Made by a program: the position numbers and the translations under genes. The notes under the pieces are model-generated. The model was given only the letters and a program-made list of their open reading frames with translations, did not search any database and was not told the origin of the DNA. A DNA stretch of 63,541 bases, counting the filler, from Lenisia limosa (taxonomy: Eukaryota > Protista > Breviatea): NCBI GenBank assembly GCA_001655205.1. It is 9 parts of 9 records of this genome, joined end to end, with 100 filler letters (N's around TTAATTAATTAA, not from the genome) between each part and the next. Parts side by side here need not be neighbours in the genome. Positions count along the whole stretch, not along the records: positions 1 to 6,914 come from LPNZ01007687.1; 8 more parts are not named here. The stretch is one strand, 5' to 3'. Positions within the stretch are counted from its first letter, which is position 1; each line of letters opens with the position of its first letter. Below, piece after piece: positions 1-6,050 of the stretch.

Positions 1-474
1 CCATGTCGGACGAACCCAGCTTTTCTATTGATCCTTGGAAACTTGCAGAGCACCTTCCCATTCATGACCCCCGTTGAACCCCTTGCCAGATCCGCTCTCT
101 ACTCTTGCCAATTGAATACTCAAGAGTTAATTAATATGATTCAAGCAGCCAACAAGGAGAATATTTCATGTGAGAAAACTGCTGAGGCTTGGGCAGTGAT
201 TGCTGAACATCGTGACCAAATTACCGAAAAGAAAATTAAGTTCTTTGAAGACAATCCAGGTGTTTTACCATGGAATGACAAAAAATTTGTTGGAAAGACT
301 CAACTTCAACCTTTTGAAGCTGAAAAGAAGAAGAGAAAGAGCATTGCTACACATTCTGCAGATCATTGGACTGAAGTATTGTTGGATAATCGGAAGAAAG
401 AAATTACAATAATCAAGAAAGCTAATATCAAAGAAAAAAAGAGAAAACATGCAGAAGCAAAAATAGGTTTTTAA
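1..474 (+). mobile_element. Possible C-terminal part of a pogo/Tigger (DDE-1) transposase, open from the window edge
   Basis: The frame is open from base 1. GVLPWNDKKFV and a basic KKKRKSI...KKANIKEKKRK tail resemble pogo-family C-termini. Motif-level resemblance only. Confidence 0.3.
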
Positions 475-1930
475 ATATTGTGCAAAATTGGAATGACTTT
501 TCAGGAAAGGGGAAGGCCAAGACTACAAAATAGCGCCTTGTGAAGAAAAATAGGAAATAGAAGTTTGTCATTTAGTTTTATGTCTTACTTTTAGAAGACA
601 ATCTCATTCTGAGTGTCTACATTTTTAGATTGCTTTTTATGAGCAACCAGCAGAAAGTAAAAATTAACGAAATTAAAACAAAATTTTTAAAAAATTATTC
701 GAAAGTTTCGGAAGTTCAGTTCACCCCCTTTTCACAGAGTTTTTATTTTTATTTTGACCCCCTCTTTTTAAGCTTTTTTCCCAAGTTGATTTTCTCTAAC
801 ATTTTTTTTAACAGAATCAAGAAGAAGACATCCAAATCAGTTATTTGCCACCATTTTTTTGAATAACAAATGATATCTAGGTCCTCGGATATATGTTACT
901 AAGTTGGCATATTTGGTCCGCTGAAACATGATTAGTAAAAGTTTGAGGGTATATGAAGGACTATTTGGGACATTCACAGTACTCTTCAAAATATTTGTTG
1001 TATGAAGTTTTAATTTGTTTCTTTCCAATTGTATTTCATCTTATTATAGGTTCTGAATAACGATACGAGAGTTTCCAATTTACCTGTCTCATTTTAACAG
1101 GTTTTGAGAGAATAATTCATCCGAAAAGCGTAAATTTGAAGTTGGTGGGTATTTATATGGACAAAATAGGACAATAATGGTCCTTTCATCTCATATATCA
1201 CTTGGTCTTTGACAACTGGCTTGATGAGATAATTGGAACAAGGATGCCACAATTAAATGAAGTAGTCTCACCTCCAAGGACCAGCTTCATTCGATGTGAT
1301 AACAAATCAGGATTTTCCTCCAGCTCATCGGTTGTTGGCATAAACAGTGACCTTTTTGAGACAACAAACAGCTCAGCAACTTCCCCTTCTACAAATAGGT
1401 ATATGAGGGAGATTCAGTGTAAGGGGGTCGACTTCATAGACAAGCTGAACTATAAGAAATGTCTTATTGTATTCGTTGTTCTTACCGCCTTAGCATCTTT
1501 TTAGACGTAATATCATCAAGCCGNNNNNNNNNNNNNNNNNNNNNNNNNNNNNNNNNNNNNNNNNNNNNNNNNNNNNNNNNNNNNNNNNNNGACATCAATT
1601 TTGAGCTGGTGTTTGATAAAGGCTGCAAGGATGACTCATGTTATAGCACTCATTCAAGTCAAAAAAAATCAATCAAGGAAACAATTGAGTACGTTGAGGG
1701 TGACAAAGACCCATAATCATACGATATAATGGATTAAAACTATTTGTGTGATCTTCTAAAAATACTTATAAACATAATTACACAACTATCTTTGAAATGC
1801 AGCTCAGATTCCGTGTTTGACTCATTAGTACAGTCCTGCGTCTCAGCATCCTTGGGCATCTAACTTGTTATGAGGGGATGTAAATGGCTTGAATAATGAT
1901 CAATATCTCAGTTTGAAGGAAGAGTGAAAG

Positions 1931-2505
1931 GTGGAGATACCAGTACAGAATATTAGTGAAACAAAACTTTTCAACGAAACCTATCATTACTATAAGCAAA
2001 GGGGCGGGAAGGGACTTGCAACAATCACGGCTTTTGAAAAAGCCACTTGTAATCGCATACCGTCTCTAAAGCCCTTCTTTTTTTACTTTTCATCAATGGC
2101 CAAAGGAATGTCTTACTGCCGCTTGAATGAGCCAATCTCCACAAAATGGTTTTCAAAGCTGCCCGGGTCTCATTTCATGAGATCCGGGGCTCCCCGGAAG
2201 ATGACAGATTTTAAGAATGCTCATAAAAAATGGATTGACTGTATTGATGTTGTTCCTGACCGTATTCATCGTAAATACTTTAAAGCGACTAATAATACCG
2301 TTGAAGACACTGTTGAACTTGAAAATGAAGTACCTGCCGGTCAGAAGGTAATGCTGCTACATTTGGTGATGCTGTACTGCTCTACGATGATGATGGAAAG
2401 TTTGAAAATATATTTAGTAAATCACCAAGAGAAATAAATCCTAAACTCGATGTTAAGAAGACACGTCGTGAAATCAGAGCAAAAATGAGTGCCAAAGTTA
2501 CATAA
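1931..2505 (+). pseudogene. Hypothetical AT-rich ORF among degenerate ORF fragments (about 600-2860)
   Basis: 168-aa ORF with a possible donor at AAG|GTAATG (about 2348) and a short downstream exon ending VT*. Neighbouring frames are broken by stops and frameshifts. Confidence 0.25.
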
Positions 2506-2885
2506 ACAATATTTTTTTTATATTTAAAAAATGTCATACCCAGAAATTCCAATCAAAACAATCCGCACAATTCCTCCCTGCATATGTAATGTAAATTACG
2601 AAGATAGAAAGAAACCATGTAAAAAGCATTCTGATAAGAAAACATTAATTGAAAATACCATTAATAGTGAACGCGGTGCTGAAAAAAACATTCCTGAAGA
2701 ACAAATTAAGTTAGAGGACTGCAAGAATATATTTTAAACGAAGTGTACAATAAAGAAAACAACAAGGTAGAAGTGTTTGTTATTCAAAAAAATAATGTTA
2801 AACGAAAAACATATTCTGCAGCTGCTTTTCGGTCCGGGTGGTAGGCCTGGCTGAATCAACAATACATCAAACACAAAAAAAGAAA

Positions 2886-4674
2886 CTAATCACGTGTTGG
2901 CTGCTGAGGGGGTTTGGGTCCACCTGCAGGTTTTGCCATTATAATTTGGTCAGCTTTCAAAACCAGTTGTGCAACCTCAGTTGCTATTCTTAGAGCTTGC
3001 TTTTTAATATAGAGGGAATCATAAATCTTCAGTTCATCACAACTTGAAAGGCACTTTTTAAAAAGAACATATCAAACTCTTCTTTCAACATCAATTGCCA
3101 CTTCTCTAATAAGCACGCAATGGCGAAACTCTGACAAAATAGATATTGAATTCATTCCAGAATTTTCAAGAATAGATTTTGGAACAGTTTCTAATGCCCG
3201 GTTAATCATTTTTTCAAAAAAAAACTGTAGCAAACTTGAGACACACAAACTTTTCAAGACCAAGGAGAGACGCTGCCCACTTTGAAATTTGTGTTCCCAT
3301 CAAAAGTGAAAAATACAAGCATACAAACATTTCTGCAAAACCAGCTCCATTAATAAAATTATTGTGATGTAAAGATTGTTTGAATACATTTAATGAATCA
3401 TTTATTGCTCTTTCAATATCATCTAAAATATTATCTGTTGGACCACGTAGAAGAATAGAAACAAATGAGAAACTGTCATCATTTCTCGGCCTAAATATAG
3501 TCATCTAATGTTAGTAGAGAAAAACAAACTCTCTTATTGGCAATTTCCTGAACACATACTGATTGACAAATCCCTAATTCTTCATTTGTTGGAATTCCTA
3601 TTCTAGAAAGAGGAATACCAGATAAAGATTTTGATAATCTTAGCAACTCAAATTTTGATAAAACCTTCAGACATAAAATCGCATTTGCCTCAAAATAATG
3701 AAGAGCCAAATCGCTCACACTACTTCCACAAATCACCACATTTATACCAGATTGTGATAATCCTTTAACAATACACGCAAGTTCATCCTCCTCAGTTTTG
3801 GAAAAATTTAAAAGATCATCCGCATTTTGAACCAAAACATTTCCTTTAGTTTCAGCTTGAGATCCTACAAATGGGCACCAAAATAAACAAAAATTAAAAA
3901 AACGTAAAAATAGCAATTTTTGCATTGTTAACTTCAGTAATTGATCCTTCTGGAATGCGATTTATAACCATTCCAGAAATAAACTCACTATCATTGATTG
4001 AACCTCCAACAACTTTTGTTATTCTCACTCTTTCAGGTTCAAATTTCGTTTTAATACTCTCACAGGCTTCAAGAACAAGTGGAAGGAGAGTGCTTTGAAA
4101 GGCATGCTGCTTAGCACTAATTGGTGCTTTTAAAATATTTAATGCATCATTATTGGGGCGTAAAGAGAGTTGTGGTATTTCATCACATAATGATATAAGT
4201 TTCTTAAGCGAAACTCGAAGAGAACTGGATATTTCACTTGGATGCAATCCTTAATGTTATATAAAGGAAAAACCCATTAAAAGCAGATCTTTACAAGCAA
4301 GTAAAACTGAACCAGCAAAAACAGTCACTAGATTGGTGGCATCTCCCAACTCATCATCCTGCATTTTTGACGCATTTGCTATGAGTTTCGCAGCAGGATG
4401 TTGAACTTCAAGTTCCAAAATAACACAAACTATTTCAAACTGAGAGGATTGTTGCCGCATCTGAGGTCACAAATAACTTTTCAAGATGATTGATGACCAT
4501 TTTATTCATTCAAAATAAATTAAAAATCTCCAACCCGTTGGGTCCAAGGGATGTTTGACCAACTTCCATTAACTTCGCACATGCATCAACATTCTTAATC
4601 AAAGCTTCCTCCACGCCAGAGAGCATCGATGACCCTTCTTTCATAATATCATTAATCCCAGTCCTTAATGCCAT
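2886..4674 (-). CDS. CCT8: T-complex protein 1 subunit theta, with 8 tiny introns
   Basis: Spliced translation gives the diagnostic motifs SLGPNGMNKMVINHLEKLFVTSDAATILSELEVQHPAAK, MGLHPSEI, CPF..ETKG, LRGPTDNILDDIERAIND and DQIIMAKPAGGPKPP, then TAG. Introns: 4511-4534, 4416-4440, 4250-4273, 3879-3903, 3505-3529, 3301-3324, about 3225-3250, 3054-3077. Confidence 0.95.
3301..3324 (-). other. 24-nt intron with GT...TG ends (CCT8 intron 6)
   Basis: GTATGCTTGTATTTTTCACTTTTG is in frame and stop-free. Removal gives an ungapped 28-residue match to the remembered PGGGATEIELAKQI...GLE segment of human CCT8. Confidence 0.65.
3879..3903 (-). other. 25-nt intron with GT...TG ends (CCT8 intron 4)
   Basis: GTTTTTTTAATTTTTGTTTATTTTG contains no AG. 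Removal joins AKIAIFT-CPF. Confidence 0.85.
4416..4440 (-). other. 25-nt intron with GT...TG ends (CCT8 intron 2)
   Basis: GTTTGAAATAGTTTGTGTTATTTTG. Removal joins ILS-ELEVQH. The internal AG and the next downstream AG are both out of frame. Confidence 0.85.
4511..4534 (-). other. 24-nt intron with GT...TG ends (CCT8 intron 1)
   Basis: GTTGGAGATTTTTAATTTATTTTG. Removal joins GG+A ATG AAT AAA = G-M-N-K. Retention puts TGA in frame. Confidence 0.85.
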
Positions 4675-4977
4675 TCTGATGAATATTTGTTTTTAAACTT
4701 GGCAGATTTGCTGCAATTAACTGCCAGGGGGGGTGACCCGCTTTGTATAGGTACCACATGATATCATATAAAAAAGGCTAATTTCGCTACTCATTTAATT
4801 TCAGAGTCGGTGGGGCCTCCCAGATAACTAATAGGTGCTAATGTCCACATATTTAGTTTTTCCCCGAGTGTCAGAGAAAACAGTTAAACAATTATTTAAG
4901 TGTATTATTAGTTTCCTATACCGTTGCAATCCCCTTCGCCAGCCCTTCACCTCCCAGCTTACTCTAACTTACTTCAG

Positions 4978-5439
4978 ATGATCGTCATCAATGGCCGCGA
5001 AGCGAAGGTCGGTCCCTCACCATCCTTTGTTCCGCAAGTCCTTCAGACTATTGGGGAGGACGCACCCACGTCACCTTATTTGGAAAATGACGATTCTATA
5101 ATTGTATATTCAACAAAAAAGAAGAATGGTAAGCATCATCGATACAAGCATGTTGAAAAAGAAATCAACTCTATTTCTTTAGAATCTTGAAAGACATAAA
5201 AAGATACATTAGTCCTTTCGGGCCTTCTTAGTATTACTCAGTACGTTTGTGACACTTTCATACCTGAAGTTGAGGCGGATAGGGCAAGGTTTGATCAACC
5301 TTCCACTGCTCCTGCATTTATCGTGGATGGTCATACTTCCCTATATGCACCAGTTGCACTGGAAGCCCTCAGGCATCATCACATTTTCGTTTACATGCTA
5401 CCATCCCATTCTTTCCAAGCCCCTAGCTGTGACCTTTAG
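4978..5439 (+). mobile_element. Degenerate pogo/Tigger-family DDE-1 transposase fragment
   Basis: YVCDTFIPEVEADRARF...FIVDGHTSLY...HIFVYMLPSHSFQAPSCD matches the DDE-1 pattern F-I-P / DGH-S / LP-HS-H-QP-D. Interrupted by stops and frameshifts. Confidence 0.6.
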
Positions 5440-6050
5440 TCTTGAAGTGGAGATGGGCATGAAAAATAACTAAAAAGACGGAAATGAAAAGATAGAAAAA
5501 AAGAAAGAAAAAAAAAAAAAAAAAANNNNNNNNNNNNNNNNNNNNNNNNNNNNNNNNNNNNNNNNNNNNNNNNNNNNNNNNNNNNNNNNNNNNNNNNNNN
5601 NNNNNNNNNNNNNNNNNNNNNNNNTGTCCGGAGCTTTGAGGACTCACATATATCATATGCGGCCGTTCAAAATTCTGGTTTTCTTGAGTAATTCTGCTTT
5701 TTTTTCTTTATTTTAAGAGATTCACTCTTTTTGAAAAACAAGTCAAAAATGTATGTGTATATTGTGTGTTTATCTCGTAAAATTAGAAGTAAAATGATCT
5801 TGACTTCATTTTCGGGGTGATTTGTTTTCTACTGTATTTCAAAAANNNNNNNNNNNNNNNNNNNNNNNNNNNNNNNNNNNNNNNNNNNNNNNNNNNNNNN
5901 NNNNNNNNNNNNNNNNNNNNNNNNNNNNNNNNNNNNNNNNNNNNNNNNNNNNNNNNNNNNNNNNNNNNNNNNNNNNNNNNNNNNNNNNNNNNNNNNNNNN
6001 NNNNNNNNNNNNNNNNNNNNNNNNNNNNNNNNNNNNNNNNNNNNNNNNNN

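Follow-up and report, generated by a model that had tools for sequence, protein, structure and literature searches.

Five of the eight introns in the CCT8 gene of Lenisia limosa cannot end in AG: four of them end in TG and one ends in GG, and these non-AG ends are used productively. Judging from this one gene, splicing in L. limosa seems to depart from the “AG rule” as a matter of routine. We consider it probable that all eight are genuine nuclear introns, removed from the mRNA at the positions proposed below by a U2-type spliceosome whose acceptor is set mainly by geometry and requires only a G as its last base (i.e., G(–1)).

Few signals of eukaryotic gene expression are as constant as the AG that closes a U2-type intron at its 3′ end. 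TG acceptors have hitherto been known only as rare alternatives that need a nearby AG (PMC2374985).

L. limosa is an anaerobic amoeboflagellate that belongs to the breviates (class Breviatea). Breviatea are sister to apusomonads plus opisthokonts (bioRxiv 10.64898/2026.01.29.702055), and genome and transcriptome data for L. limosa come from Hamann et al. 2016, as cited in a passage of PMC5953543. The DNA analyzed here, referred to as the window, is a joined stretch of 63,541 nucleotides. The sequence around CCT8 is that of a draft scaffold, in which three N gaps occur.

An intact CCT8 gene with eight ultrashort introns

An intact CCT8 gene lies on the minus strand of the window. Its coding sequence runs from 4674 to 2886 and is interrupted by eight introns of 24–28 nt. 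The coding region and the introns are as follows:

2886–4674, minus strand: CCT8 (TCP-1 theta) coding region; ATG at 4674–4672, stop codon TAG at 2888–2886, nine exons, 529 codons
4511–4534, minus strand: intron 1, GT..TG, 24 nt; GTTGGAGATTTTTAATTTATTTTG, with end TTATTTTG; phase 2 in the Gly47 codon
4416–4440, minus strand: intron 2, GT..TG, 25 nt; GTTTGAAATAGTTTGTGTTATTTTG, with end TTATTTTG; phase 0 after Ser70
4250–4273, minus strand: intron 3, canonical GT..AG, 24 nt; ATAAC-ATTAAG
3879–3903, minus strand: intron 4, GT..TG, 25 nt; GTTTTTTTAATTTTTGTTTATTTTG, with end TTATTTTG; phase 2 in the Thr233 codon
3505–3529, minus strand: intron 5, canonical GT..AG, 25 nt; contains CTAAC
3301–3324, minus strand: intron 6, GT..TG, 24 nt; GTATGCTTGTATTTTTCACTTTTG, with end CACTTTTG
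3198–3225, minus strand: intron 8, GT..GG, 28 nt; GTTTTTTTTTGAAAAAATGATTAACCGG; its removal restores the frame at a stretch of nine Ts
3054–3077, minus strand: intron 7, canonical GT..AG, 24 nt; placed by excision enumeration and by alignment with 18 CCT8 proteins

The sequence-only reading of this locus had placed four GT..TG introns at 4534–4511, 4440–4416, 3903–3879, and 3324–3301, and their coordinates, lengths, and ends proved exact in the sequence. The GT..AG introns it had placed at 4273–4250, 3529–3505 (the one with CTAAC), and 3077–3054 were also present as described. The ends of the eighth intron (3225–3198, GT..GG) are an addition to that reading.

When exon 4 was compared with PDB, T-complex protein 1 subunit theta chains ranked ahead of the other CCT subunits (best E = 3.5e-10), and PF00118 was present on the genomic ORFs of the locus. 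Excision of the four GT..TG, one GT..GG, and three GT..AG segments yielded a 529-aa protein that aligned end to end with Tetrahymena and animal CCT8 at 40–44% identity, just this range of identity being found for the other CCT8 proteins that were fetched. Pfam gave no match on eight flanking ORFs, and Rfam gave no match either.

A transcript-derived L. limosa protein (EukProt EP01086_Lenisia_limosa TRINITY_DN350_c0_g2_i1.p1; referred to as P0412) proved to share a 90% cluster with the exon-4 ORF of the window. Since P0412 is a TransDecoder ORF on one de novo Trinity transcript, it is independent of any splice-site model. The spliced model and P0412 were identical at 529/529 residues, with all nine exons intact. 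Apart from ORFs of the window itself, alignment-query, single-exon, and representative protein searches brought up nothing but distant CCT8 proteins (at most 48% identity in the representative search and, in the other searches, at most 55% across part of the query), and no transcript protein. Cluster look-ups of the other window ORFs gave no second Lenisia transcript, and P0412 was on none of the indexed contigs against which it was searched.

Every junction was ungapped when the model was aligned by MAFFT to 18 full-length CCT8 proteins. Specifically, the four TG junctions lie inside highly conserved motifs, i.e., GPNG|MNKMV, ATILS|ELEVQHPAAK, AIFT|CPF, and GAGFAEMF|MGTQ. A scan of JGI metagenomes only yielded relatives of 38–39% identity, and thus no comparative intron data. 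The nearest relative of exon 5 (L002) was set aside, since it is a ciliate-code CCT8 with in-frame stops and is therefore uninformative on the Lenisia lineage.

Excisions that reproduce the transcript protein

The cuts compatible with P0412 were enumerated by trying all starts up to 40 nt to either side of the model donor and all lengths of 6–120 nt, exact reproduction of P0412 being required. For the five introns with odd ends, the allowed excisions were:

Intron 1: GG..TT, GT..TG, TT..GA
Intron 2: AG..TT, GT..TG, TT..GG
Intron 4: GT..TG, TT..GG, TT..GT
Intron 6: GT..TG, the sole solution
Intron 8: AG..CG, GT..GG, TT..GG

In this full enumeration, no excision ending in AG reproduced P0412 for introns 1, 2, 4, 6, or 8. 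Together with the 529/529 agreement between P0412 and the cut model, this sustains the earlier claim of real splicing at TG acceptors. A GT start, as expected of a U2-type intron, was allowed for all eight introns and was the sole option for intron 6. The 3′ AG expected of such an intron was absent from five of the eight (four TG and one GG). GT/GC..AG alternatives around the TG introns were also considered and rejected, as they delete conserved residues or enter a neighbouring intron; for intron 2 none was found.

Of the allowed readings, only GT..NG applied to every one of the eight introns. For introns 1, 2, 4, and 8 the protein evidence also fits a cut one base to either side, and their reading as GT..NG is adopted by parsimony with intron 6 and with the three AG introns. 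Intron 6 (3301–3324) is in frame and stop-free, yet it is missing from the transcript-derived protein. The suggestion that this segment might be retained, or might use an AG 21 nt downstream, was thus not upheld: it is removed, and GT..TG is its only possible cut.

With the other seven introns removed, the CCT8 frame was still broken at the nine-T run near 3225, where the homologues require the removal of 28 nt. A cut from 3225 to 3198 yields KFAT|ALETVP, matching the family consensus [SA][FL]E. An alternative 35-nt GT..AG form of intron 8 was rejected, as with this cut no length of the T run brings the exon that follows into the correct frame. The earlier picture of a relaxed acceptor accepting AG or UG held as far as the TG ends are concerned, which are indeed used, but was too narrow, since one intron ends in GG, and is here widened to NG ends.

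A count of the pattern GT-N17–18-TTTTG over the minus strand of the entire 6.9-kb part of the window that carries the gene gave four occurrences, and all four are the frame-restoring TG introns. In a second-order Markov simulation of the gene, the chance expectation was a mean of 1.1 occurrences, with P(≥4) = 0.027.

RNA and DNA data at the locus

In the polyA RNA run X2, a query built around introns 1 and 2 (positions 4370–4590) found 7 of 17 sampled 31-mers, i.e., a share of 0.41, the expectation computed from the coordinates being 0.43 if both introns are spliced and 1.0 if they are retained. Across 2850–4750, X2 contained 0.67 of 199 sampled 31-mers, for an expected share of 0.70–0.77 if all eight introns are spliced and of 0.85–0.91 if only the three AG introns are. 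The DNA run X1 contained 1.00 of the unspliced words in both queries. The junctions at the protein level and these k-mer shares together establish that the eight segments of 24–28 nt are absent from the mature CCT8 message. As expected of U2-type introns, the segments are thus present in the DNA (contigs) and missing from the mature mRNA (transcript protein and RNA k-mer shares). When RNA contigs of X2 were mapped to positions 1–5525 at a minimum likeness of 90%, none fell on CCT8, probably because eight gaps of 24–28 nt lower the likeness below 90%.

A Logan contig of X1 (2,008 nt, depth 43) was identical to the window over 2763–4770, and over this range it showed no alternative letters, indels, or joints. 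The ENA metaSPAdes contig L001 was also 100% identical to the window, and fills its gaps. The DNA contigs contained the unspliced form only, with no variant, no intronless copy, and no excised form. The X1 contig is unbroken, whereas a branched k-mer graph would be expected if the DNA contained a second, nearly identical copy or a form of the gene lacking introns.

These data leave very little room for an artefact or a dead locus, i.e., for an error at base –2, a decaying pseudogene with mRNA supplied by another copy, or removal at the DNA level. Such an account could appeal to the draft state of the scaffold with its N gaps, and to the two assemblies not being independent: since they probably stem from the same reads, they rule out assembly error but not sequencing error. 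Nevertheless, five independent frame-exact errors are implausible at a depth of 43 with no variant letters, in line with the earlier argument that independent errors are unlikely, and the base at –2 of the TG introns reads T, rather than the AG that would have undone the claim, in both assemblies of the DNA data. A pseudogene is contradicted by nine intact exons and by the complete match to the transcript protein. Moreover, the X1 contig lacks, throughout its 2,008 nt, the joints expected from a second copy or an intronless form. The scenario of an untranscribed locus beside a canonical paralog fails as well, with the locus being transcribed and spliced and no second copy occurring in the DNA contigs. 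The share of unspliced words, which is 100% in X1 vs. 41–67% in X2, does not favor such an account either. Neither do the segments resemble the germline-limited segments (IESs) of ciliates, as the DNA contigs contain no excised form or joint and the segments have no TA..TA boundaries. RNA editing, previously put forward as an alternative, is an unnecessary, if still conceivable, explanation of the TG ends.

Anatomy shared by AG and non-AG introns

Seven of the eight introns are 24 or 25 nt long and one is 28 nt. They are poorer in GC than the exons (12–29% vs. 36%) and richer in T (43–76% vs. 32%), and their donors read GTTTG, GTTGG, GTTTT, or GTATG. The last base is G in all eight, the preceding base being A in three, T in four, and G in one. 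An A stands at –6 in six of the eight introns, while the remaining two have one at –7, accompanied in one of them by another at –5; this is a post hoc pattern, with an uncorrected P of ~0.004 that becomes ~0.08 when ~20 choosable positions are allowed for. A further G within the last 7 bases is absent from all introns except for G27 of intron 8. Branch-like pentamers were found in introns 5, 3, and 8 (CTAAC, ATAAC, and TTAAC, respectively), and the TG introns contain TTTAT or TTCAC. None of the introns, folded with its flanks as RNA, did better than its shuffles (z from –0.9 to +1.4), which argues against structure-guided removal.

This common anatomy bears on whether the non-AG introns might be removed by a machinery of their own, i.e., the minor (U12-type) spliceosome or a structure-guided, non-conventional pathway like that of euglenids. 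Rare GT-TG and GT-GG ends are known among U12-type introns (PMC1557818, Table 2), and the start of intron 6 (GTATGCTT) agrees with seven of the eight bases of the U12 donor consensus. The donors of the other odd introns (GTTGGA, GTTTGA, GTTTTT, and GTTTTT) nevertheless do not fit RTATCCTT, and a TCCTTAAC branch box is missing. Accordingly, U12 membership was not borne out when the five odd donors (GTTGGA, GTTTGA, GTTTTT, GTATGC, and GTTTTT) were compared with RTATCCTT and TCCTTAAC was sought 10–15 nt from the 3′ end. The structure-guided pathway, in turn, is disfavored by the folding result. Since the TG and GG introns are like the AG introns in length, type of donor, composition, and the A at –6, and indeed in every other respect, one machinery for all of them is most likely, and we regard a separate one as very unlikely.

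Downstream AGs and the choice of the acceptor

A single U2-type machinery could still respect the AG rule at the recognition stage, if early factors (U2AF) recognized an exonic AG downstream and catalysis then picked the TG or GG upstream of it, much like in human TG-AG tandems. We deem this dependence unlikely, although it is the most serious of the alternatives. Every odd intron is indeed followed by an exonic AG that ends 7–34 nt downstream (at +34, +10, +14, +21, and +7), and human TG acceptors function only in tandem with an AG at most 28 nt away (PMC2374985). AG dinucleotides are that frequent by chance, however, and the three AG-type introns have one as well, at +11 to +14. The AG at +34 of intron 1 exceeds the human limit of 28 nt. 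Moreover, the downstream AGs sit in conserved coding sequence, and their use would shift the frame or remove conserved residues, the product of the TG or GG cut being the one that encodes the intact protein. Finally, a 24-nt intron with a putative branch site 6 nt from its end would leave little space for recognition of the U2AF type.

The reading we prefer is that all eight CCT8 introns are removed by a U2-type spliceosome that has adapted to introns this short and this rich in T. Its acceptor would be set mainly by geometry, with both the intron length and the short distance from a putative branch adenosine being fixed. G(–1) would be the sole acceptor base required, leaving base –2 free to be A, U, or G. 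Structures of the C* and P complex spliceosomes show G(–1) at the 3′ end paired with G(+1) at the 5′ splice site, and the branch adenosine in contact with A(–2). The L. limosa spliceosome may have kept the contact between G(–1) and G(+1) and lost the need for the one between A(–2) and the branch adenosine. In the 24-nt introns, the fixed short spacing from the branch adenosine would make a single G reachable. Intron 8 has two Gs side by side and is cut after the second, with the same +5 spacing from an A as elsewhere, so a “first G” rule fails and a ruler fits better.

How far this extends beyond CCT8 seems to us evenly poised: L. limosa, and perhaps all breviates, may possess a major spliceosome that has no 3′ AG requirement and finds its acceptor by a branch-adenosine ruler and a terminal G, with a considerable fraction of its ~25-nt introns genome-wide ending in UG, GG, or another NG. 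If so, L. limosa, which is free-living and related to animals and fungi, would break the AG rule naturally and constitutively.

Implications

The CCT8 gene of L. limosa would offer a natural experiment on how the site of the second splicing step is chosen and on what the contact between A(–2) and the branch adenosine contributes. It could also show whether introns of ~25 nt dispense with AG reading of the U2AF35 type. On the practical side, gene finders that only accept GT/GC-AG introns will break many L. limosa gene models, and possibly those of other genomes with ultrashort introns. Broken models would in turn have an effect on how many genes breviates are credited with and on which genes they are said to lack. 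Breviates are used in reconstructing the ancestor of animals, fungi, and their relatives.

Comparison with known systems

A literature search on GT-TG (or GU-UG) introns, tiny non-canonical introns, and breviate introns returned nothing comparable, with the genome paper of Hamann et al. 2016 lying outside its reach. Human alternative TG 3′ splice sites are found in 36 genes, at ~0.01% of candidate motifs, and TG is never the sole acceptor there, an AG always lying no more than 28 nt away (Szafranski et al. 2007, PMC2374985). Like the human sites (PMC2374985), the TG introns of L. limosa look U2-type, have a GT donor, are cut after TG, and carry pyrimidines before it. Unlike them, TG (four times) and GG (once) serve as productive acceptors in five of the eight introns of one essential gene, and the introns are only 24–28 nt long.

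Ultrashort spliceosomal introns occur in Paramecium (~25 nt), Stentor (15–16 nt), and chlorarachniophyte nucleomorphs (18–21 nt). The L. limosa introns share with ultrashort introns elsewhere a narrow length class, a high AT content, motifs that are weak at both ends, and a candidate for the branch A near the 3′ end, but differ from them in their frequent non-AG ends, those other introns having been described as GT..AG. BRAKER3 models canonical intron ends. Myxobolid myxozoans and Dicyema have introns of 22–27 nt with reduced motifs and AG ends, the myxozoan annotation having been made with BRAKER3 (PMC13644364). Non-AG ends may have been overlooked in myxozoans, because this tool presumably allows only canonical ends.

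In U12-type introns, the 3′ site is chosen by its distance from the branch site. Their 3′ terminal dinucleotide is variable, with rare GT-TG and GT-GG cases among them (PMC1557818). Unlike U12-type introns, which are rare and not ultrashort, the CCT8 introns lack the defining donor (RTATCCTT) and branch box (TCCTTAAC).

Giardia and Trichomonas have a fused motif of branch point and 3′ splice site (ACTAACACACAG), in which the branch A lies at a very short and constant distance from the 3′ end and the AG is invariant. Introns 3 (ATAAC-ATTAAG) and 5 (CTAAC-ATTAG) of L. limosa CCT8 bear a tentative resemblance to this fused motif. In contrast to the invariant AG of Giardia and Trichomonas, however, the L. 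limosa motif tolerates TTTTG and CCGG.

The 3′ signal of the CCT8 introns

An A was located at position –6 (counted back from the 3′ end of the intron) in six of the eight CCT8 introns, the remaining two having an A at –5/–7 or at –7. Moreover, the last seven bases contained no G besides the terminal one, except for G27 in intron 8 (3198–3225). From this base pattern, A-N4-G is put forward as a candidate fused branch/acceptor signal in the CCT8 introns.

Sequence surrounding CCT8

The scaffold is interrupted by three gaps:
1524–1590, 67 N
5526–5624, 99 N
5846–6050, 205 N
In ENA contig ERZ3820729 NODE_3190 (L001, a metaSPAdes contig with 100% identity), real sequence spans all three, with bridge lengths of about 113, 41, and 192 nt vs. 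the 67, 99, and 205 N of the scaffold, respectively.

Upstream of CCT8, loose ends of short RNA contigs were situated at 5034, 5065, 5349, and 5421, and a contig of high depth (272) from the DNA run linked 5065 with 5421 on opposite strands. These features point to an element, repeated or inverted, at 5034–5421.

In the region 1931–2737, two ORFs are convergent with the CCT8 3′ end:
2177–2437, + strand, ORF
2531–2737, + strand, ORF
In Pfam, one of them hit a caulimovirus coat-protein domain below threshold (E = 0.041), and a cluster look-up grouped neither with any Lenisia transcript. These ORFs may be retroelement remnants. Depth in the DNA run was 265–400 across 1666–2220.

The start of the window (1–740) in turn looks like a multi-copy, expressed element, with a DNA depth of 578–1,227 vs. 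about 43 across CCT8, and with a polyA RNA contig of 908 nt matching it at ca. 95% (17 other letters replacing a 56-nt stretch). It carries one lysine-rich ORF, for which a Pfam search returned no match:
28–474, + strand, ORF of 148 aa

CCT8 in other organisms

The closest exon-5 relative in the representative library was a Logan contig (L002; SRR28244987, 1,040 nt), whose CCT8 runs in a single reading frame with two in-frame stop codons. These stops point to a source organism with a ciliate-type genetic code, which has no bearing on the CCT8 intron finding.

Finally, introns 1 (4511–4534) and 3 (4250–4273) each lie exactly 1 nt off an intron position common to the CCT8 genes of Aplysia and Pocillopora, the chance of two of eight introns falling that near to animal positions being roughly estimated at ca. 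0.03. Both may be old introns whose position slid by 1 nt at a G|G site.
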